64,000 bases of DNA from Setoptus koraiensis (Eukaryota > Animalia > Arthropoda), in NCBI GenBank assembly GCA_048013815.1, contig CM106585.1, positions 5,146,001-5,210,000 of the forward strand, written 5' to 3'. This document shows, piece by piece, positions 28,382 to 45,685 of the stretch (position 1 is the first letter of the stretch; every line of letters starts with the position of its first letter). The notes under the pieces are model-generated. The model was not told the DNA's origin. It did no database searches and worked only from the letters and a program-made list of their open reading frames with translations. Position numbers and translations under genes: made by a program.

Positions 28382-29342
28382 CACTGCGTGCACTTTTTCC
28401 AATGAACTTACAACGGCTTCTAAAAGAATCCGATAGGGCGGCGCTACTCAGCTCTCTGTTAGAGAATAGCGGTCGATAATGAGATCTGCAGGAACCGAAT
28501 TGCAAATGAGAAGGGTCCCCATTTGTACATAATACTATTTCAACGCTCCCTCTATTTTCCGTGGATTCTGATTGTCCAATGATTCGGCCCACTGTCGGAG
28601 TGCGCGTTGTCTGCCTTCATCTCAGGTAGTTGATGATGCAATGGATGAATAATTTAGAAAGTTTTGGCCAGACAGGGGTCTCGATCGGGCAATTTGAAGT
28701 TGAGCTGGCTTCGTATCTGAAGCCGATCTATGCTGCTTTCATCGATCAGCTGACAAAATGTCGGAGAAATCTTTGATGAGATTATCATAGATAATTTTAG
28801 AGAAAAAAAGTTCTATCTGTAACTGTCAGGTGTTTCATAAGGTGTGATGGGTAATTACCGGCATATGATTATGCTAACGACATACTTATGGCAGTAAGAT
28901 AGCGAAAGTGACAGGTGGTGAAAGGACGCTTAGACACGGAGCTAAGTGCAACTCTAGACGAATAGATTTAGTGTAATCGATATTTGATATCAGCGACTAC
29001 AAAAATAGTTTGTGAAATTACAGGTAAAACACTTCATTTTGATAGCTAATCGAGGATATGCATATATATAAATATATACACATATTTAAGACTTATTTGG
29101 GCAACATTATTAAATATAATCATTGATAATATCACTAAATATAAACGATAGTGTATGTACAGATATCTGACAGGATTTACTAATTAGGATAATTAACTAA
29201 TTTTATTAATAATCAGTCGATTTCATTATTAATAACAATTAATTAATATTATTAATAGGCGTTCTGATTAGTAATACAATATTATCATGGATCAATGATA
29301 AGTATAATAAATAATAAGCTTTAAGGTAAGTTTCTAGCTCAT

Positions 29343-30760
29343 TTAAGTCATCTGATTCGAGGGTTCACCGGTAGGTACCACGGGAGAAAATTTATCCGCA
29401 AATCGTTTTCGTTGCCGTCTATTTGTGAACCATTTTCTAATACTTCTTGTGGGAATATTTCTGCAAGAAAAAGAAAAGAAAATAATCGTTAGTTTTCATA
29501 CGAAGTGGAGATGCATGATGATGGGAAAATGGAGATGAAGGCTTGACGGCGCAGCAACAGTTGTTACATCATTGAGAGTACTTACAATTCTTCAGATATA
29601 ACATCTAGTTGCCAACGATCAGGGTGGTTGTTTTTGGCGAATGAATCTTCGAGGTACTGTTTGGCCTTTTCATTAAATAGAACAACTTTTCTTTTTCTCT
29701 CTCTAGGTACCTTCGATACTGCAGGCATGAGATCCAAAGTTTTACCGCTTCTTCTCTGTTTCTCTGCCCACCTCAACCAGTCTTTGAGCATTGGTATCAA
29801 TTGGAGGGCTCTTTCAGGTTCCATTTGTAAATTCTCAAAATGGTAGATAATGGCGTCTGTGCATGGCTGTTGACCACTTGTGAAGGCTCTTAAGCTTTGA
29901 GCGGCGCCTTTTTGGCTGAGACGGATATATTTACGGCGTTGTTTGAGTTCTTGTGCGAACTCTTGGATGATTTGTTTACTCTTTTCAGTCTCGTCATAAT
30001 CTTTCCTAATAATTGAATTGTCGTTGTGATGAGAATGGTCATGTGTCATGGAGCTAAACTCTTTGTCGTCTGCGTCATCATCATAATCGTCCTGATCATT
30101 AAGATCGTCTTGCTGAGTATCATCAAAGTCGTCCGTATCGTCGAATGAATCGATGTCGCCATCAAGTCCATCCTGGTATGATTGATTGTGATGTAAATGA
30201 TGCCGGTGTAAATTGTTTAAATGAGTTGCATGATTTGAGAGATGTTGATGCAATTGATGGTGATTGTGGCGATGCTTTGGTTCGGGAATGAGGTCTTCTT
30301 GGTGGTGAGTTTCATGAGATTCTAGATAGTCAATAACAGGGCTACCATTTGATGAGGAGGTGGTGGTATTTGTCTGTAGAGATTGTTGACGAGATCTCCT
30401 AGATTTGGTGGCTAAATTCAAACACTGTGCTGACCATGACTGATTGTTGTTGTTACTACAGTTGTTTGATAGTGGCACATCTGTTGCTGCCGATGGGTCC
30501 TGGTGAGTTTGTTTCAGATGCTTTTGTTGTTGCTCGTGCAGGAGTTGTTGCGTATGTAGCAATTGTTGTTGCTGGTGTGAATTTGGTTGATTTTGTTGTA
30601 GGACGGTGACGGCTGCTAAAGCAAAGGCCTTGAGTAGAGCTGCCTGCTCCTCAGAGAGACTGGACGAAATTAAAGCTAAATTTGCGAGGGATGAGGCCAA
30701 TTCGGTATTTTCAGTGTTGACACCGATGTTATTACTGCAAGCAGTGGCTGTCTTATCCAT
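29343..30760 (-). CDS. Divergent POU-domain transcription factor (class VI / pdm3-POU6F-like), copy A, 430 aa: exons 30760..29586 and 29460..29343
   Basis: POU-specific-like EFAQELKQRRKYIRLSQ...FENL...LIPMLKDWLRWAE; homeodomain RKRKVVLF...EEL|NIPTRSIRKWFTNRRQ completed by splicing a GTAAGT..TTGCAG intron. The P..A..L.P.L..WL..AE.....G...LM pattern fits class VI. Confidence 0.85.
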
Positions 30761-33700
30761 GCTGATTGGAATGTGCTAATATGTGTCTAGGTAACGATTC
30801 TAAAGGCTGTGCATGTTAGGTGACAGTTGATTTAAATGATTGAATCGTGTGCTTGTCTAGATATCCTCATTGTCCGGCATAATTGGTGATAAATATTTTC
30901 TAAGACAGGAGAGCACGAGGAGGTTCTAGGGGACGGCGTCGTGGACTGTAAAACACAATGGCGTAGATGAAAGAGCCGAGACAGAACAAAAACGTCTAGG
31001 GCAAAGAACACGAGTTGAGCATGGAACAAAGAAAATGAACGCAACACACAGGAAAGGGGAAGGCACGTTGTGCTAGACTTAGCGTTGCACACAACACACA
31101 CACACACACACGCACACACGCACAAACACACAGACTATTTTCTAGCGCACACACACGCACACAGAAACACACACGATAGGCAGCACGAGTGATAAAGCGA
31201 GAGCGTTAGACAACGCGCACAGAAGGCACAGCGACAGGAGAGAGCGATAGAGACAGGGAGGCACATGAGCAGGCAGTCTCTTTCCCCTGAGTGTCGCTCT
31301 TTGTTCCATCAGATACGTTCAACTCGTGTTTCTCCTCGATACAACGCGACGATGCAAAGATAGCACACAAACATTCGTTTATGCTGCACAACCCAAACTC
31401 ATATGTCTGCGTGTGTGTGTGTGTGTGTGTGCATGCTTTTGCTAACGATTGCTGTCGCTGTCGTTGCCGCCGCTGCTGCTGTTGCTTCTGCCTTCCCCCA
31501 CTGGACTTCCCTCCGAATCGAACCAACGACCAGCGCGACCAGCGAGAGCTCAAACGGGGAAGATCTGTCCCTATATCCATGTCTACATGACTGCATGCAG
31601 TTGAGTTGTGCATAGGAACACTTCATGACAGAACGCTACCATCACAACTGCCCATAGACGCCACCAGGCCTGGCGCATATTAACGTATATATCGCTCGCA
31701 AACATGAAGCCAGCGCGTCCCCTGGTCGTTATGTGATGGTGGCTTGAGTTAGCGCGCTTTGTGCTCGAATGATGTGTGCGTTCATGTCTGTACGTTAGAG
31801 TGACTCACACACACACACACACTCACACACACATACAATGGTTCATTTTGGTGGTGGACTGTTGGGGCAAATTGCAGTTTGCGCTCAACAACAACAACAA
31901 CAACAGCAACACCAGCGCAGAGCGCGGTCCAGTGTGTTGTTGCAGTGGCATAGGCAGGATTAGCAGTAGGTTGCAGCTAACATTGAATTCATTGCAGACT
32001 GCAGTCTGCAGCCTACCGACAGCAGAAGGGCCGAAGCGAACAACAACAACAACCACTGGCTACTCGCTTTTCACTCGATAGCTTCAAGGTGGGGGTCGCA
32101 AACACGAGCTCGCAGGAGCACACACACACACACACACACGCTTGCATTTACGCAGACATGCTTAGGCACAGACGCACACACACACACATTACAGTCGGAC
32201 GAGCCAAGATTTCATTTCCCTCGCTTTTCTTGCTTTGTGCTCATTTCTTCTCTGTTCATGTTTTGCACACAAAGAGACTCGGGCGCACACGCAGGGGATG
32301 TTGATTGTGCTGCTGCTGCTGCGGCGAGCATTATAGTTTGCGCTGCTCTTGTTGTTGTTGCTGCCGCTGCCGCCGCCGTATAGGTAGGCAGCCACCGGCA
32401 GCCGTGTAGCAGAGGCAGTAGTTGTCGTTGTTGCCGGTGTTGTTGTTACTGTTGTCGCTGTTGCCGGCGATGATTTGAGAATGGACAAAAACGCGCGCTT
32501 CACAGGAAGCTCGCGCTCTATCGGAGTCGCCACAGCGATATGAGCATATCCGAGAGGGGAAAATTATTGAAAACATACTGTTGCCTAATGCCAGTCTTTC
32601 ATTCATCGATATCACTGCTATTGTCGCCTAGTCCAGTTTCCAGGTTATTTCTTAATGAAGTTGCTACCTATGCGCGATTCGATTGCAACCCGAAAGAAAA
32701 AAATCGACGTCAGGGCTGCCTCTTTTTTACGACTCTACAGCTACCTGTCTCACGAGTCCTGTGAGCCTTGTGAGAAGTGCTTGCGCTGGTATAGCACAGT
32801 CGAGAGCTAACCGAAAATTGTCACTAATGATTGAAAGTAGAACAACAAGTTGTCACTTATTTTGCAATTTGCATTCGTTTGTCAGCGCGTTTGAAAAAAT
32901 TGCCCGAGTTAAATGTAATGATCGCTCTATGACTCATGCTGTACTAGTATAGTAAAAGTATATAAGTTGACCGAGAAGTTGATCTGAGAACGGGTCTCGT
33001 TGTAAACTAGACGCTTGCATACGATCTGCGAATTGACGCCTCGCCAGCAAACTAGCGACGCAAAGTCTAATCGTTTCGTCTGTCTATCAACGTTTCATTT
33101 GCTAGTGTCTCGCGCTGAACTGGAAACACAAAAGTGCGTGGCGTCCAACATGTGATATAGAAGCAATATCGGCGAGCGATTGTATAGATGCATCGCTGAT
33201 ATCACAATTTGGCCTGGCTAACAAGATGAGTCTACCCTTTGTAAGCGTATATCTTTACACATTAATGTGTTTGCCTGTTTGCGTCTTATAGTCTGCTCTG
33301 TCCTTCCTGTCTGTCTGTTTGTTTGTCTCTTTCTCTCTCGCTCTATCTGCCGAGCAGCAGCTGCCGCAGCATCTGCGCTCGCGTGGCTGCGCCAAAAGCT
33401 ACAGCGTTACACATGCCTTTCCTTAGCTTGATTTATTTCTGCAGTTGTTGTTGTTGCTGCTGTTGTTGCAGACTAGCAGCAGCAGCAGCATCAAGTTCAT
33501 TGCGCCGGCGCGCTAACGCAGATGCAGTCTGCGAGCGATGTGAGCACTATTCAAGGCTACAAGGTCAAAAACAAGTAAGCAGGCAGGCGGGCATAATGTT
33601 GAGTTGAACACATATAAATCCTCCAATATAGTGAGTTTACTGGCGAACATAGAGCAAACTAGGCACAACCTGGTTTTTGTAGAACCACTGTCCCCTTATC

Positions 33701-34847
33701 ACCTCAGACAGCAGGCTCGATATTGTAGCATTCGAGTGGTGAAATAATGCGAGCTTCCTACGAAGCGCGCGTATTTGTCCATTCTCAAATCATCGCCGGC
33801 AACAGCGACAACAGTAACAACAACACCGGCAACAACGACAACTACTGCCTCTGCTACACGGCTGCCGGTGGCTGCCTACCTATACGGCGGCGGCAGCGGC
33901 GGCAGCAACAACAACAAGAGCAGCGCAAACTATAATGCTCGCTGCAGCAGCAGCACAATCAACATCCCCTGCGTGTGCGCCCGAGTCTCTTTGTGTGCAA
34001 AACATGAACAGAGAAGAAATGAGCACAAAGCAAGAAAAGCGAGGGAAATGAAATCTTGGCTCGTCCGACTGTAATGTGTGTGTGTGTGCGTCTGTGCCTA
34101 AGCATGTCTGCGTAAATGCAAGCGTGTGTGTGTGTGTGTGTGTGCTCCTGCGAGCTCGTGTTTGCGACCCCCACCTTGAAGCTATCGAGTGAAAAGCGAG
34201 TAGCCAGTGGTTGTTGTTGTTGTTCGCTTCGGCCCTTCTGCTGTCGGTAGGCTGCAGACTGCAGTCTGCAATGAATTCAATGTTAGCTGCAACCTACTGC
34301 TAATCCTGCCTATGCCACTGCAACAACACACTGGACCGCGCTCTGCGCTGGTGTTGCTGTTGTTGTTGTTGTTGTTGTTGAGCGCAAACTGCAATTTGCC
34401 CCAACAGTCCACCACCAAAATGAACCATTGTATGTGTGTGAGTGTGTGTGTGTGTGAGTCACTCTAACGTACAGACATGAACGCACACATCATTCGAGCA
34501 CAAAGCGCGCTAACTCAAGCCACCATCACATAACGACCAGGGGACGCGCTGGCTTCATGTTTGCGAGCGATATATACGTTAATATGCGCCAGGCCTGGTG
34601 GCGTCTATGGGCAGTTGTGATGGTAGCGTTCTGTCATGAAGTGTTCCTATGCACAACTCAACTGCATGCAGTCATGTAGACATGGATATAGGGACAGATC
34701 TTCCTCGTTTGAGCTCTCGCTGGTCGCGCTGGTCGCTGGTTCGATTCGGAGGGAAGTCCAGTGGGGGAAGGCAGAAGCAACAGCAGCAGCAGCGGCGGCG
34801 GCAACGACAGCGGCAACGACAGCGACAGCAATCGTTAGCAAAAGCAT

Positions 34848-34882
<35 letters not shown>

Positions 34883-35534
34883 GACATATGAGTTTGGGTT
34901 GTGCAGCATAAACGAATGTTTGTGTGCTATCTTTGCATCGTCGCGTTGTATCGAGGAGAAACACGAGTTGAACGTATCTGATGGAACAAAGAGCGACACT
35001 CAGGGGAAAGGGACTGCCTGCTCATGTGCCTCCCTGTCTCTATCGCTCTCTCCTGACGCTGTGCCTTCTGTGCGCGTTGTCTAACGCTCTCGCTTTATCA
35101 CTCGTGCTGCCTATCGTGTGTGTTTCTGTGTGCGTGTGTGTGCGCTAGAAAATAGTCTGTGTGTTTGTGCGTGTGTGCGTGTGTGTGTGTGTGTGTTGTG
35201 TGCAACGCTAAGTCTAGCACAACGTGCCTTCCCCTTTCCTGTGTGTTGCGTTCATTTTCTTTGTTCCATGCTCAACTCGTGTTCTTTGCCCTAGACGTTT
35301 TTGTTCTGTCTCGGCTCTTTCATCTACGCCATTGTGTTTTACAGTCCACGACGCCGTCCCCTAGAACCTCCTCGTGCTCTCCTGTCTTAGAAAATATTTA
35401 TCACCAATTATGCCGGACAATGAAGAAATCTAGACCTCCCGACAGAGATCATTGTATTGTATTAATGAACTGTCACCTATAATGATAATATATAGAAACT
35501 GTTAACAATCAAGTAACTTAATTCACCTACTAGC

Positions 35535-36985
35535 ATGGATAAGACAGTCAGAGCATGTAGCAACAGTATTGGTGTCAATACAGAAAACACCGAGCTTGCA
35601 TCATCTCTTGCAAATTTAGCTTTAATTTCGTCCAGTTTAACCGAAGAGCAGGCAGCAGTATTAAAAGTTGTTGTTAATTTAGCAGCAGTTGCTGTTCTCC
35701 AACAAAACCAACCCAATTCAAATCAACAATTACCAACTCAACGAGCACACCACCAAACAACCAATTCAACATTATCGCAACAACATCAGTCCAAACTCCT
35801 ATATCAGCAACAAGAAGACTTAGTGGCGGCCACAAATGCATCATACTTAAATAATAATAGTAACAACAACAACATCAACAACAATCAGTCATGGTCAGCA
35901 CAGTGTTTGAATTTAGCCACCAAATCTAGGAGATCTCGTCAACAATCTCTACAGACAAATACCACCACCTCCTCATCAAATGGTAGCCCTGTTATTGACT
36001 ATCTAGAATCTCATGAAACTCACCACCAAGAAGACCTCATTCCCGAACCAAAGCATCGCCACAATCACCATCAATTGCATCAACATCTCTCAAATCATGC
36101 AACTCATTTAAACAATTTACACCGGCATCACTTACATCACAATCAATCATACCAGGATGGACTTGATGGCGACATCGATTCATTCGACGATACGGACGAC
36201 TTTGATGATACTCAGCAAGACGATCTTAATGATCAGGACGATTATGATGATGACGCAGACGACAAAGAGTTTAGCTCCATGACACATGACCATTCTCATC
36301 ACAACGACAATTCAATTATTAGGAAAGATTATGACGAGACTGAAAAGAGTAAACAAATCATCCAAGAGTTCGCCCAAGAACTCAAACAACGCCGTAAATA
36401 TATCCGTCTCAGCCAAAAAGGCGCCGCTCAAAGCTTAAGAGCCTTCACAAGTGGTCAACAGCCATGCACAGACGCCATTATCTACCATTTTGAGAATTTA
36501 CAAATGGAACCTGAAAGAGCCCTCCAATTGATACCAATGCTCAAAGACTGGTTGAGGTGGGCAGAGAAACAGAGAAGAAGCGGTAAAACTTTGGATCTCA
36601 TGCCTGCAGTATCGAAGGTACCTAGAGAGAGAAAAAGAAAAGTTGTTCTATTTAATGAAAAGGCCAAACAGTACCTCGAAGATTCATTCGCCAAAAACAA
36701 CCACCCTGATCGTTGGCAACTAGATGTTATATCTGAAGAATTGTAAGTACTCTCAATGATGTAACAACTGTTGCTGCGCCGTCAAGCCTTCATCTCCATT
36801 TTCCCATCATCATGCATCTCCACTTTGTATGAAAACTAACGATTATTTTCTTTTCTTTCTCTTGCAGAAATATTCCCACAAGAAGTATTAGAAAATGGTT
36901 CACAAATAGACGGCAACGAAAACGATTTGCGGATAAATTTTCTCCCGTGGTACCTACCGGTGAACCCTCTGATCAGATGACTTAA
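35535..36985 (+). CDS. Divergent POU-domain transcription factor, copy B, 441 aa: join(35535..36742,36868..36985)
   Basis: Same domains and intron as copy A; identical protein from NQSWSAQ onward except PSDQMT vs PSNQMT at the C-terminus. Confidence 0.85.
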
Positions 36986-37795
36986 ATGAGCTTGGATCTC
37001 ACCTTGTAGCTCATTTTTTTATCTTACTTATCATTGATCCATGATAACATTGTATCACTAATCACACGGCCTATTAATATGTAACTGTCGAATGTCTGTA
37101 ATTATATTATTGTCTATATATTTATTAGTATTATCAATGATTGTATTGAATAATATTGCTCAAATACGTTATATATATGTCTATATATATATATTTATAT
37201 ATATGCATATCCTTAAATAGATATCAAAATGAAATGTTTTACATGTAATCTTATAAACTATTTTTGTAGTCGCTGATATCAAATATCGAATACACTAAAT
37301 CTATTCGTCCAGAATTGCACTTAGCTCCGAGTCTAAGCCTCCTTTCGTCACCTGTCACTTTCACTATCTTACTGCCTTCGTTAGCATAATCATATACCGG
37401 TAATTACCCATCACACCTTACGAAACACCTAACAGTTACAGATAGAACTTTTTTTCTCTAAAATTATCTATGATAAGGTCATCAAAGATTTCTTCGACAT
37501 TTTGTCAGCTGATCAATGAAAGCATCATAGATCGGCTTCAGATAAGAAGCCAGCTCAACTTCAAATTGCCCGATCTACACTGCTATCTTACCAAAAGCTG
37601 TTCCACAACTAAACAACCGTTCGTGATCACAGAGTACATTTTCCGTGCTCTATGTAATCTATATGAAAAATCAGCTTGTCTAGAAGCTTTCAACATTAAT
37701 GACAATAATTCACTTGCGATAGATGTTAGTATCGGCAATCGTGTCCTCATCTTCAACAAGAATACGCTTCCATAATAATTGAAACAAAACTGTCC

Positions 37796-38870
37796 ATGAT
37801 GAAATTATTCCGATTTTTGCAACAAACAAATGTATTTTGTGCCCAGAGAGGTAAATATTTAATGTGTTTCTATGGCCTAATTCAAATCGTATATCAAATT
37901 CTAATGAGTCAACTGTTCACTTCTTTCTATGTTTATATTGCCAGCCAGAATGGCCTCGACCACAAGTTCACCCAGCCTGGTGGGCTTCGTCGGAGTCGGT
38001 AATATGGGCTCTTTGATGACCAGAAATTTGTTAAAAAACGGTCACAAAGTTATGGTTTACGATGTGAACAAAGCAGCCACCAACGAATTGGCTGCCGACG
38101 GGGCATCAGTAGCCGAAAGTCTAGCCGAAGTGGGAGATAAATGTCATAGGGTGTTCACTATGTTACCTACACCTGAGATCGTGTTAAATGTCTACAAAGG
38201 CTCAGATGGACTTCTATCAAGGGTTGCACCATCAACAGTTCTAATCGATTCATCCACAATAGATCCGTCCACAGCAAAAGAGGTCCATGCTGCAGCAGCA
38301 GCCAAAAATATCAAGTTTTTTGATGCACCAGTTGCAGGTGCTGTACCCGCCGCAAAAGCCGGCACACTGACTTTCATGGTGGGAGGCGACAAATCAGAGA
38401 TCAAACAGCTCTTAGAACCCTATCTATTGTCAATGGGAACTAGCGTTTTCCCATGCGGCCCAATTGGCTCTGGTTGTGTGGCCAAGTTGTGCAACAACAT
38501 GATGCTTGCCATCTCGATGGTCGGACTAAGTGAAGCTATTCATTTAGGCAGGAACTATGGATTGGATCCTAAGATGGTCAGTGCCATTATTAACAAAGGC
38601 TCAGGTCGTTGTTGGAGCTCCGAGATCTACAACCCATCACCAGGAGTTGTCGAAACAGCTCCCTCTTCAAACGAATACAAGAATGGCTTCAGAACGGATC
38701 TACTTTACAAAGATCTCGGCTTAGCCTCTAAGGTGTCCCAAGAAGTCAGATCTCCTATACCGCTTGGCACCCTGACACATCAAATTTATCGTATCATGGT
38801 GAATTCTGGTCTCTTCAAAGACAAAGATTTCTCTGCTGTCTACAAGTTTCTTGAGGGTCAAAGTAAATGA
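37796..38870 (+). CDS. HIBADH: 3-hydroxyisobutyrate dehydrogenase, mitochondrial, 326 aa: join(37796..37850,37945..38870)
   Basis: GFVGVGNMG Rossmann motif, DAPVAGA..AGTLTFMVGG, KLCNNMML (catalytic Lys) and SGRCWSSE. A 94-nt intron (GAG|GTAAAT..GCCAG) adds the transit-peptide-like exon MMKLFRFLQQTNVFCAQR in frame. Confidence 0.92.
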
Positions 38871-40292: not shown

Positions 40293-42719
40293 ATGATTGA
40301 TATTGCCAAGTTGAAGCCGTTTTTTCCCTTGAAGACATTCAGAGACGTTGAGGAACTATTTGAATATAATTTAAATCCGAAAAATGGAACCCCAAATCTC
40401 ACTCTATTATCTATCGTTATAGGATTAATTGAACACAGCTTAGTGACTATTAATGACAAAGAAGACCTTTTAGCTAACTCCAGACCTGTATATAATCTCA
40501 AAGATGTTTGTCAGAGGCAACTATTGTATCAGAGGCCATTTACCCAGATATCGGCACAGCATTCTCATCATTCACCCAAGTCAATCTACCAACAACGAAA
40601 CAAATATGTAGACCAATCCGACCAAGCCGAATCATCCTCTGCTAGCAACTCTGGTGATTCAGAATCACGACACACCTCTTCACCTGCTCCAGATGAGAAT
40701 CTTGAAATACCAGAGGTTGAATATGAAATTGTTGAAACTTTTTATAAAAAATTTGTTGATCAAATCAAGAATTCTATAGATCTTAAAGACCCTAACTTAC
40801 AGAAACCCAATCTAAGGATTAAGAAAATCTCAGATATCATTTGGTCCAATCTTCCTGGTAGCTACTACAAAGACAAAGCGCATCTCCAAAGTGTTTTCAG
40901 TTATTTAACAACGAGCAAATTGGATTGTTTTGGATTAGCTTTCGCTGTAATAGCAGGATGTCAAATACTCAATTTAAAGAACACTTATTTAGCTCTCAGC
41001 GAAGATCACGCATGGATCATGTTTGAACTACCTCAAGAAGAACTGAACAACAAACTTAGCAATGATAAATTAAATAACGGTCAACCCATACCAAGTTGTG
41101 CTACTCATGGTACATGTGAGGTAACTTGGCATGGAAAAGCTAACAGCGACAAACGAGGTCAATCTGTTACCTATCAAAATTGTTGGCTATACACCAATGG
41201 ATATGCAGTCAAATGCGACTTGAGACTATGTGTAGCTGCACTCATATCTTCAATTAACCCTTCCATCAACCCTAATACGGATTCAGAGATACTGGCCTTC
41301 TTACAGCAACGTTTATTGTGGCTGCTATTCAAACACGACAATTATTTTCCAATGTCTTTAGGGAATCTTGGAGAACTAGAAGATATATGCCCATCCAAAA
41401 ATTCACCACTAACCTCCTCCGAACTTTTTCAGCTTGGAATAGACTTATCAAAGAAACGTTACAATGACTCGCATGTGTATCCTTACACATACCTAGCTGG
41501 GTATTTTTTTCGTCATGGAAGATTCAAAGAAGCTCTTATGACTTGGGCTGATGCCTCCCTAGTAATGACTAACTACAACTACTCACGAGATGATGAAGAA
41601 ATTTATAAGGAATTTGACGAAATAGCCAATAAGCTCATACCATCCATGCTTGAAGTCGTGTCAGCCGGTGGACTCGAACCTGGACAGATGTCAAAAACAC
41701 CATTTCTTCAAGATCCTGAATGCCTTGCGTTAATTCTCAAATTCTACGACAACATATGTCGCTGGGAAGAAGGTTCATCAACTCCAGTCCTGCACTTCGG
41801 GTGGGCCAAATGTTTTGTTGCTACCATACTCAAATTTAGCCCCAACGTTAGATCGAAGCTTAAATTGTTGACATTTGAAGAATGGCACCAAAATTGCGCC
41901 TACTCTAACAATTCCAAGTGTCTAGAGGGAGATGATACAAAATGTAGATCTATCAAAACAACGTCAGATGAAGAACCATTTGAATTAAAGTCACACTCTT
42001 CCAAATCGGATATTTGTCAAAAAGCTATTAAAACGACCAACGATTCAGAGAAGGCATTGGACTTGACGTGTAGTCTGGCCAAGAAAGCCAATAAAAATCG
42101 CGATGATATTCCAAATAGTAAAATTAGTCACATCGCAGACGCGTGCACTGAAAGAATCCTAAATCCAAGTTTTCTTTTAGGGACTGGAGACAATTCACCT
42201 TTCACAGAATCTGATATGGGCTGTGACTCTAGTGACTCCAACGGAAACAGTACCAACGAATACAAGCAAATAAAAAAAGAACTTGCCCTAGTGCGAAAAT
42301 TAGACAGTGCCCGTTCAAAAAAAAGTGATTGCCATGGAAAGAGAAAGAAAGTAACGAAGACGGAGTTCGAGATTGACAATAAAATTGAGGAAAGGCCCGA
42401 ATGTGTGAAGACTCAATCTCAAACAGATATCGTTGAACCCCAATCAAAAGCGGACAGGCAACCGCCAAACAGATTTGAATTGGATGACGATTGTAATGTT
42501 ATTGTCGTGCTCATAAGCCACAAGATGGTTGGTGCTAGAGATCTGTTATTAGCTGAAAGATTGAACACTACTACAATTGACCTGAAATTGACTGCCCAAT
42601 CAGACCTCGGTGTCGCTCGTGGCCGCTTCAGTGACCCTAACAATGCGAGGGGTTCTTCAGCAACCTCGAGCACCTCATCCGCCTTAACAACTAGGGCTTC
42701 AAAAAGACTTAGACGTTGA
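40293..42719 (+). CDS. MEN1: Menin, intronless, 808 aa
   Basis: FPLK, PNLTLLSIVIG, YYKDKAHLQS..SYLT..KLDCFG, ALSEDHAW, EVTWHGK, HVYPYTY, NYSRDDEEIYKEF, TPVLH.GWAK and C-terminal LKLTAQS. Confidence 0.95.
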   Translation: MIDIAKLKPFFPLKTFRDVEELFEYNLNPKNGTPNLTLLSIVIGLIEHSLVTINDKEDLLANSRPVYNLKDVCQRQLLYQRPFTQISAQHSHHSPKSIYQQRNKYVDQSDQAESSSASNSGDSESRHTSSPAPDENLEIPEVEYEIVETFYKKFVDQIKNSIDLKDPNLQKPNLRIKKISDIIWSNLPGSYYKDKAHLQSVFSYLTTSKLDCFGLAFAVIAGCQILNLKNTYLALSEDHAWIMFELPQEELNNKLSNDKLNNGQPIPSCATHGTCEVTWHGKANSDKRGQSVTYQNCWLYTNGYAVKCDLRLCVAALISSINPSINPNTDSEILAFLQQRLLWLLFKHDNYFPMSLGNLGELEDICPSKNSPLTSSELFQLGIDLSKKRYNDSHVYPYTYLAGYFFRHGRFKEALMTWADASLVMTNYNYSRDDEEIYKEFDEIANKLIPSMLEVVSAGGLEPGQMSKTPFLQDPECLALILKFYDNICRWEEGSSTPVLHFGWAKCFVATILKFSPNVRSKLKLLTFEEWHQNCAYSNNSKCLEGDDTKCRSIKTTSDEEPFELKSHSSKSDICQKAIKTTNDSEKALDLTCSLAKKANKNRDDIPNSKISHIADACTERILNPSFLLGTGDNSPFTESDMGCDSSDSNGNSTNEYKQIKKELALVRKLDSARSKKSDCHGKRKKVTKTEFEIDNKIEERPECVKTQSQTDIVEPQSKADRQPPNRFELDDDCNVIVVLISHKMVGARDLLLAERLNTTTIDLKLTAQSDLGVARGRFSDPNNARGSSATSSTSSALTTRASKRLRR

Positions 42720-43084: not shown

Positions 43085-45685
<2,601 letters not shown>

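Follow-up and report, generated by a model that had tools for sequence, protein, structure and literature searches.

A palindrome of 8,893 bp (28683-37575), located within the 64-kb stretch of Setoptus koraiensis DNA analysed here (the window), is very probably, as judged from one genome, an old inverted duplication in which gene conversion between the arms has recurred on either side of an island that resists it. The palindrome comprises two 3.83-kb arms and a spacer. A repeat search, blastn and MAFFT, used to align the arms globally, concurred that 28683-32514 and 33749-37575 are inverted copies, confirming almost to the base the palindrome with two head-to-head POU genes described in an earlier note on this DNA. 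Each arm encodes one intact two-exon POU-homeobox gene, and the pair is transcribed divergently, away from each other.

Identity between the arms changes from block to block. At the centre, 1,234 bp of unique sequence (32515-33748) form the spacer, which is flanked by non-coding, microsatellite-rich inner arms of 1.66 kb (30855-32514, paired with 33749-35435) that differ by 12 substitutions in 1,653 bp and six indels (about 99.3 % identity). All six indels fall inside simple-repeat arrays detected using TRF. Searches of the spacer and inner arms for structured RNAs or hidden genes returned no Pfam or Rfam match. The inner arms give way to a diverged island that takes in, on the left (30453-30854), codons 1-103 and the 94 bp preceding the ATG and, on the right (35436-35875), codons 1-114 and the 99 bp preceding the ATG. 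Its two versions are 64.6 % identical, whereas the tracts on either side of it reach 99.5 and 99.3 %. This island had been recognised previously and is real, but its coding-side edge lies at 30452/35876 rather than at 30445/35882. Beyond it, a high-identity tract (29358-30452) spanning most of exon 2, the intron and codons 115-392 of exon 1 differs from 35876-36970 by 5 substitutions in 1,095 bp (about 99.5 % identity); counted from 29359, it holds the four differences already tallied for about 1.09 kb of CDS plus intron, two of them intronic (29469 and 29502) and two synonymous (29954 and 30197). The adjoining segment, 29274-29357, is 85.7 % identical to the other arm and is followed by an AT-rich 3′ UTR zone (29174-29273, about 20 % GC; right counterpart, 37056-37084), which aligns poorly, as had been noticed, and differs in length by 71 bp between the arms, likely representing a break in their homology. 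Outermost, the 3′ flank of the left gene (28683-29173) pairs with 37085-37575 in blocks of intermediate divergence (90.1 % identity, 48 substitutions, K 0.107), matching the first estimate of roughly 90 %; the right block stops 354 bp short of the start of a 3-hydroxyisobutyrate-dehydrogenase-type gene (37929-38870).

The left POU gene lies on the reverse strand and has exon 1 at 29586-30760 (ATG at 30760), a 125-bp GT..AG intron at 29461-29585 and exon 2 at 29343-29460 (stop TAA, 29343-29345), encoding a protein of 430 aa. Its counterpart on the forward strand encodes 441 aa and has exon 1 at 35535-36742 (ATG at 35535), a 125-bp intron at 36743-36867 with 2 differences relative to the left intron, and exon 2 at 36868-36985 (stop TAA, 36983-36985). 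Both ATGs are preceded by in-frame stops, at distances of 18 and 21 nt. Exon 1 encodes an N-terminal motif, a linker, the POU-specific domain and the first two-thirds of the homeodomain; the intron is positioned inside the homeodomain, between EEL and NIP; and exon 2 encodes homeodomain helix 3 and the C-terminus, an exon boundary that is backed by blastn against intronless relatives. At codon 437, the right copy has D and the left copy N.

As in other POU-domain transcription factors, the predicted proteins are bipartite, combining a POU-specific domain with a homeodomain (PF00157 + PF00046). The S. koraiensis pair is very divergent, however, with the Pfam Pou domain (PF00157) reaching just 42 bits in both genes (cut-off 27; right copy, residues 275-344, E = 7.5e-11), and the mite family adds its own conserved N-terminal helical motif, for which there was no Pfam match and no Atlas look-alike. 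Since the intron splits the homeodomain, the domain was called by comparing the spliced model with the relative P0016 (which carries PF00046), yielding a 60-residue homeodomain identical at 57/60 positions. The best solved match for a relative's POU plus homeodomain region was POU6F1 (PDB 3d1n; E = 8e-17, 65 bits), with Pit-1 barely below it (E = 1.5e-14, 58 bits). The stretch was found in 0 sequencing runs recorded as RNA.

Within the island lie the 5′ leader and the codons for an N-terminal helical hairpin, at about residues 16-57, and for a low-complexity linker rich in Q and N. Codons 65-114 are of low complexity and align unreliably, and the island dN/dS covers codons 1-64, where the left and right copies differ with a dS of 1.87 and a dN of 0.10 (Nei-Gojobori; dN/dS about 0.05). 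Codons 115-436, in contrast, return a dS of 0.011 and a dN of 0, with 2 synonymous differences in 322 codons. Silent-site divergence shifts about 170-fold inside one exon (synonymous differences, island versus the remaining gene, Fisher p = 6e-34). Saturated silent sites in combination with a conserved protein show that the duplication is old and that both gene copies have evolved as functional genes would.

Three levels of divergence are apparent between the arms (K about 0.005-0.007, K about 0.11-0.16 and dS at least 1.9), a strong non-uniformity that is incompatible with a single divergence time; the earlier note had named equal divergence times across the blocks as the outcome that would speak against its reading, and the blocks differ strongly. 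Were the high-identity tract to diverge at the substitution rate of the outer blocks, no more than 5 differences across its 1,095 bp would be seen with a probability of 7e-40. Purifying selection was ruled out as the source of the identity because the intron, silent sites and non-coding inner arms are equally identical, as is a His/Asp-rich linker that is near-identical between the left and right copies yet unalignable and hypervariable among 17 relatives. Together, the three levels and the identity at unconstrained sites support the old duplication with patchy conversion put forward earlier, and the similar K on the two sides of the island (0.0046 and 0.0073) is as expected under mutation-conversion balance.

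We propose that, ever since the copies arose, each arm has time and again served as the template for mending breaks in the other by intrachromosomal gene conversion. Two tracts would thereby be kept at a low, steady-state K of about 0.005-0.007, one made up of the non-coding inner arms adjoining the spacer and the other containing the linker, POU domain, homeodomain and intron. Such conversion would halt at the roughly 400-bp island, which, judging from the saturation of its synonymous sites, probably escaped very early. The 3′ ends past codon 436 (K about 0.11-0.16) would have escaped later, the 71-bp indel in the AT-rich 3′ UTR probably having severed them from the main homology block. The predicted outcome is a pair of transcription factors with identical DNA-binding domains, paralog-specific N-termini and paralog-specific promoter-proximal DNA. 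The suggestion that conversion keeps the DNA-binding domains identical holds insofar as these domains are homogenised; however, conversion is not targeted at them, as non-coding DNA is homogenised equally well, and the special feature of the locus is the escaping island. No clear signal of GC-biased conversion was detected in the coding sequence (GC3 0.38 in the converted tract versus 0.31-0.43 in the islands).

As to the origin of the island, we lean slightly towards selection against conversion of the N-terminus or 5′ leader having started it, with mismatch-driven heteroduplex rejection now maintaining it. The island may instead be neutral, such that slippage indels in the Q/N-rich linker and (AAC)n repeat broke homology by chance, heteroduplex rejection has operated since and the difference between the N-termini is without functional meaning. 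We regard this as a real possibility, albeit the less probable one. Four indel events and low-complexity coding sequence are indeed present in the island, its coding-side edge sits in the (AAC)n repeat (right-arm array 35862-35884, 12-bp length difference) and its alignable part, codons 1-64, displays no amino-acid-change excess suggestive of positive selection (dN/dS about 0.05). However, a 190-bp N-terminal motif and a 95-bp leader are positioned between the slippage-prone linker and the 1.66-kb homology, and it is unlikely that conversion tracts from the inner arms would never extend a few hundred bases when more than 1 kb has been homogenised on both sides.

Comparison with other mites suggests when the duplication arose. 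A search with the full-length exon-1 protein recovered only 17 relatives, all distant and intronless, while a search with the N-terminal 114 aa returned 0 matches. The related-mite loci were single-copy and intronless in 12/12 cases and only about 70-72 % identical to the S. koraiensis gene at the DNA level; a metagenome scan identified 3 loci, each single-copy, and no close relative with two copies was found in the protein or metagenome collections searched. Nor was synteny with the relatives detected, as their neighbouring genes (HECT, SQS_PSY, ABCD, RGS and TAF11) differ from those in S. koraiensis (tRNA synthetase, AAA ATPase, HIBADH, menin and GCN5/PCAF). The left and right N-terminal motifs are 85 % identical to one another and 36-49 % identical to those of 16/17 relatives (9-14 % for P0004, which is without the motif), and both N-termini share an MDKT...NTENTE extension and a 2-residue motif deletion that are absent from all relatives. 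As the two N-termini are mutually closest and 12/12 related loci are single-copy, the duplication appears to have arisen within this lineage; on this comparative evidence, it is lineage-specific but old.

Short-read data place both arms in cis, with two copies per genome, on the basis of contig junctions and depth. Both island contigs (474 and 512 nt) were recovered with 0-1 differences in short-read runs of 4 studies, and both spacer/arm junctions were crossed by contigs in 3 runs from independent studies. In runs X1 and X2, coverage was about 118-156x for the islands and spacer and about 245-310x for the arm pieces that the copies share. This 1:2 ratio indicates that the arms are present exactly twice, a third near-identical donor being absent. 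Depth in run X4 varied erratically, with 586 over the right island, 100 over the left and 8-20 over the spacer, and the ratio is therefore backed by X1 and X2 only; X4 also returned a G, the right-arm state, at 31526 in a contig placed in the left arm, where contigs are collapsed and arm origin is ambiguous.

These data bear on a further scenario, in which the palindrome is young (of outer-block age or less) and one island was recently replaced through ectopic conversion, the donor being a distant third paralog elsewhere in the genome. Replacement of a single patch would fit the equally low K on both flanks of the island and its sharp edges, but we consider it highly unlikely: the island contigs are at single-copy depth in X1 and X2, equal to the spacer, with the shared coding tract at 2x and not 3x; the 64-kb window contains no third POU copy or other island-like DNA; and the left and right N-termini share lineage-specific features missing in the relatives, such that the donor must have been an in-lineage paralog that has since been lost. 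An assembly artefact, in which two haplotypes or a fold-back chimeric read were fused into a false palindrome, is largely refuted and exceedingly improbable, for although palindromes are a known long-read artefact and the islands form a heterozygosity-like bubble between shared contigs, fold-back artefacts give perfect arms without a spacer, whereas this locus has 1,234 bp of unique spacer and arms that are 90 % identical in the outer blocks and 65 % identical in the islands, its spacer depth equals that of each island and is half that of the arms (X1, X2), and contigs of three independent studies run across the two spacer junctions into arm ends that are inverted with respect to each other.

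The preferred reading, recurrent conversion around a resistant island, has clear parallels. The Drosophila pairs Hsp70Aa/Hsp70Ab and Amy-p/Amy-d are palindromic and evolve in concert via ectopic gene conversion (PMC3924832); these are likewise closely linked, divergently oriented mirror-image paralogs, with arm-to-arm conversion and near-identical coding sequences, including at synonymous sites. Concerted evolution of Amy is confined to the coding region, with the flanks evolving independently, whereas in the mite 1.66 kb of intergenic non-coding DNA is homogenised too and the exception to homogenisation falls within a coding exon (the first 114 codons). The Drosophila cases rest on cross-species evidence and the mite case on one genome.

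Duplicates subject to conversion pressure carry a published mark, a divergence peak flanked by low divergence (Teshima and Innan 2008, reviewed in PMC3924837), as exemplified by exon 5 of the human red/green opsin genes (PMC3924837). The mite island is similarly a short high-divergence region with very low divergence on both sides, within one gene pair, and can be read as conversion-intolerant. The opsin peak, however, is centred on residues known to change function in tandem genes, while the mite peak, found in inverted genes, spans about 400 bp, extends into the 5′ leader and has saturated silent sites. Palindromes of mammalian sex chromosomes, such as human Y P6 (PMC3723533) and X palindromes (PMC8981503), also have inverted arms and a unique spacer and keep their identity by intrachromosomal conversion. 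They extend over tens of kb to Mb, are >99.9 % identical throughout and reside on non-recombining or sex chromosomes, in contrast to the 8.9 kb mite palindrome with its mosaic identity in a tiny genome; furthermore, unlike in the mammalian palindromes, no GC-bias signature is visible in the converted coding tract of the mite.

The process itself is known and no new mechanism is revealed. One further idea, which we offer as speculative and rather unlikely, is that the palindrome acts as a device tying two factors to one evolving DNA-binding specificity, while specialisation would remain open to the promoter-proximal DNA and to the N-terminal hairpins, which are candidates for binding a partner or for dimerisation. 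On this view, the POU domain and homeodomain, unusually derived in this lineage, could have changed in both copies at once through conversion, and the island, where sub- or neofunctionalisation would take place, would be actively shielded by selection.

Two cautions follow from the locus, as it collapses in short-read assemblies and dating the duplication from a single Ks for the whole pair would be wrong by two orders of magnitude. The locus presents an unusually clean natural case of mosaic concerted evolution with sharp breakpoints, one of which lies in a trinucleotide repeat. At 8.9 kb, and in a very small genome, it is a candidate compact model for how conversion tracts end and for how a sub-region of a duplicate escapes homogenisation, and it may also serve to examine whether regulators with a common DNA-binding domain diverge via their N-termini.

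Inverted copies at 28683-32514 and 33749-37575, separated by a unique spacer of 1,234 bp (32515-33748), are recovered by three methods: inverted-repeat detection over 26-40 kb, minus-strand blastn between the left and right halves, and global MAFFT alignment of the arms. Outside 28683 and 37575, only ~35-40 % of positions match, which is the random level for unrelated sequence. These searches, together with block statistics, confirm the palindrome of mosaic arm identity described in the earlier note. The inner arms (30855-32514/33749-35435) are nearly identical, as had been proposed together with microsatellite slippage: they differ by 12 substitutions over 1,653 bp (JC distance K 0.0073) and six indels, all six of which fall in TRF simple-repeat arrays [(GT)n, (CA)n, (CAA)n, (TGC)n, (GCTGCC)n and an 18-mer]. 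Beyond them lies a diverged island (30453-30854/35436-35875; 64.6 % identity, four indel events), followed by a high-identity tract (29358-30452) with 5 substitutions over 1,095 bp (K 0.0046). Counted from 29359, this tract holds exactly the four differences previously tallied, two intronic (29469 and 29502) and two synonymous (29954 and 30197). Segment 29274-29357 then falls to 85.7 % identity (K 0.16), and the AT-rich 3′ UTR zone (29174-29273) differs in length by 71 bp and aligns as poorly as the note had it, while the outer block (28683-29173/37085-37575), estimated there at roughly 90 %, measures 90.1 % (K 0.107).

Two smaller hairpin- or MITE-like inverted repeats are found just beyond the palindrome's left boundary (27941-28037/28286-28382, 97-nt arms at 96 %, 248-bp loop; 27336-27390/27561-27615, 55-nt arms at 91 %, 170-bp loop). 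An intronless 3-hydroxyisobutyrate-dehydrogenase-type gene (37929-38870; 313 aa, NAD_binding_2 and NAD_binding_11) begins 354 bp past the end of the right arm, and its promoter region probably extends into the right outer block. Downstream, single-ORF genes for menin (40293-42719; Pfam Menin, E = 2e-160) and a GCN5/PCAF-type acetyltransferase (43109-45685; PCAF_N, GNAT and bromodomain) stand side by side, exemplifying the intron poverty of this genome.

The arms carry ORFs of 392 and 403 codons that point away from each other, each with a Pfam Pou domain. Both terminate directly after ...ISEEL, and splicing out a 125-bp GT..AG intron restores ...NIPTRSIRKWFTNRRQRKRF..., i.e. homeodomain helix 3. 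The left gene (minus strand, 430 aa) thus comprises exon 1 at 30760-29586, the intron at 29585-29461 and exon 2 at 29460-29343; the right gene (plus strand, 441 aa) comprises exon 1 at 35535-36742, the intron at 36743-36867 and exon 2 at 36868-36985. We consider the splice model validated because alignments with DNA of intronless relatives break off at 29586/29588 and pick up again at 29459-29460, gapless on the relatives' side; the spliced homeodomain is identical at 57/60 residues to that of P0016, a related protein carrying PF00046. The nearest solved POU structure is POU6F1 (E = 8e-17) with Pit-1 barely behind, and therefore no single POU class was assigned. The intron, located between EEL and NIP within the homeodomain in both copies, is absent from all 12 related loci and is either retained or newly gained in a clade that has lost introns on an extreme scale.

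Contigs assembled from short reads support both arms as real DNA. We compared Logan contigs from four runs of four studies with 30300-36000, and both island contigs (30423-30896, 474 nt; 35394-35846, 512 nt) were present in all four with 0-1 differences, each bordered on both sides by the same shared sequence. The spacer junctions are spanned in runs X1 and X2 by contigs 32460-33435 and 33502-33803, each extending exactly 30 nt beyond the last arm-specific variant, and X4 also covers both. Copy number was taken from X1 and X2 only, as depth is erratic in X4 and very low in X7. Islands and spacer stand at 118, 135 and 125x in X1 against 246-268x for shared arm pieces (~244x for the shared coding tract, calculated from the bin mean), and at 148, 144 and 157x in X2 against 271-411x; these ratios therefore indicate that each genome has the arm twice and the spacer and each island once. 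A fold-back artefact would yield perfect arms and no spacer, whereas the arms are imperfect and the spacer unique; allelic collapse would place the spacer at arm depth, whereas in X1 and X2 it lies at island depth, about half that of the arms. Depth in X4 was very uneven (right island 586, left island 100, spacer 8-20, inner arms 170-660), a pattern that might stem from whole-genome amplification of tiny animals or from material derived from transcripts.

Nei-Gojobori analysis of the left-right codon alignment separates stretches of contrasting divergence along the genes. Codons 1-64 have dS 1.87 (pS 0.69, effectively saturated) and dN 0.10 (dN/dS ~0.05); in the Q/N-rich, indel-rich codons 65-114, dS is beyond correction and dN is 0.56; codons 115-436 have dS 0.011 (2 changes) and dN 0; and one synonymous and one N/D change at codons 436-437 mark the onset of the 3′ level of divergence. 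Silent differences separate the island from the remainder of the gene (Fisher's test, p = 6e-34). Constraint is ruled out as the cause of arm identity because the identical part includes the intron, 1.66 kb of non-coding DNA and a His/Asp-rich linker unalignable among the 17 relatives. Saturated silent sites combined with a conserved peptide in the island in turn show an old duplication with both N-termini under purifying selection. The blocks thus show three divergence levels (~0.005, ~0.11-0.16 and at least 1.9), which fit recurrent arm-to-arm conversion and, with the identity at unconstrained sites, support the old duplication with patchy conversion that the note had suggested. Segments would have stopped exchanging at various times. 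Mutation-conversion balance predicts that K should be similar on either side of the island, as it is, and no single event need be invoked.

A protein search returned 17 relatives (239-366 aa), all intronless and 74-83 % identical to the window's proteins across the POU and homeodomain regions; their compact, intron-poor contigs suggest that they come from eriophyoid (gall or rust) mites, a group in which the Aculops genome revealed extreme intron loss (PMC7738191). The window's POU/homeodomain (36350-36985) forms a long branch (74-83 % to relatives, which have a median of 87.5 % among themselves) and carries substitutions at otherwise invariant positions, e.g. W for Y in HPDRYQL and M for L in ENLQLEP. 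All 12 related loci (three from a metagenome scan) are single-copy within flanks of up to 10 kb, and no shared neighbour genes were found in those flanks. The left and right N-terminal motifs share 85 % identity with each other but only 36-49 % with those of 16/17 relatives, which are ~80 % identical among themselves; P0004 is without the motif (9-14 %). The duplication therefore arose inside this long-branch lineage, yet long enough ago for silent sites to saturate.

The island comprises 94-99 bp before the ATG, where stops occur in frame at -18 and -21, and a coding part holding the family-conserved N-terminal motif and the beginning of a disordered low-complexity linker. The motif, LANLSLAEIASML..QQEVLLASISVAA.FIQQLQ (35580-35705/30715-30590, codons ~16-57 of both genes), is common to P0001-P0017 as a family and has no match in Pfam or Atlas. 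AlphaFold2 (19-sequence alignment) predicts a helix-turn-helix hairpin (residues 16-32 and 37-57) with moderate confidence (pLDDT ~67-72) and a confident POU-specific domain (pLDDT ~80-94). The position of the motif recalls that of the HNF1 N-terminal dimerisation domain. A short motif, AACTGTCACCTA, is kept in both otherwise unalignable upstream segments (30817-30833/35470-35486, ~60-70 nt before each ATG) and could serve as a core-promoter or regulatory element, or belong to a 5′ UTR.

As to why the island persists, we lean slightly towards selection against conversion of the N-terminus or leader, of which a 'peak of divergence' is the signature (Teshima and Innan, PMC3924837). Also compatible is a neutral homology break, in which slippage in the Q/N-rich linker and (AAC)n array was followed by heteroduplex rejection; the array does lie at the coding-side edge of the island, yet conversion tracts that homogenise >1 kb should have run on into the 190-bp motif and leader, which border directly on 1.66 kb of perfect homology, hence our preference for selection. 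With a dN/dS of 0.05 in codons 1-64, there is no positive sign of adaptive divergence; selection and a neutral break both agree with the data and may have acted sequentially. Recent import of the island from a third paralog is unlikely, given that the island contigs stand at single-copy depth and the shared coding tract at that of two copies rather than three, and that the left and right N-termini are each other's closest relatives.

Arm-to-arm conversion is established in the palindromic Drosophila pairs Hsp70 and Amy (PMC3924832) and in sex-chromosome palindromes (PMC3723533, PMC8981503). The kind of system is already known, and this locus is best read as a further, textbook-quality example of mosaic concerted evolution acting on a palindrome that carries genes.
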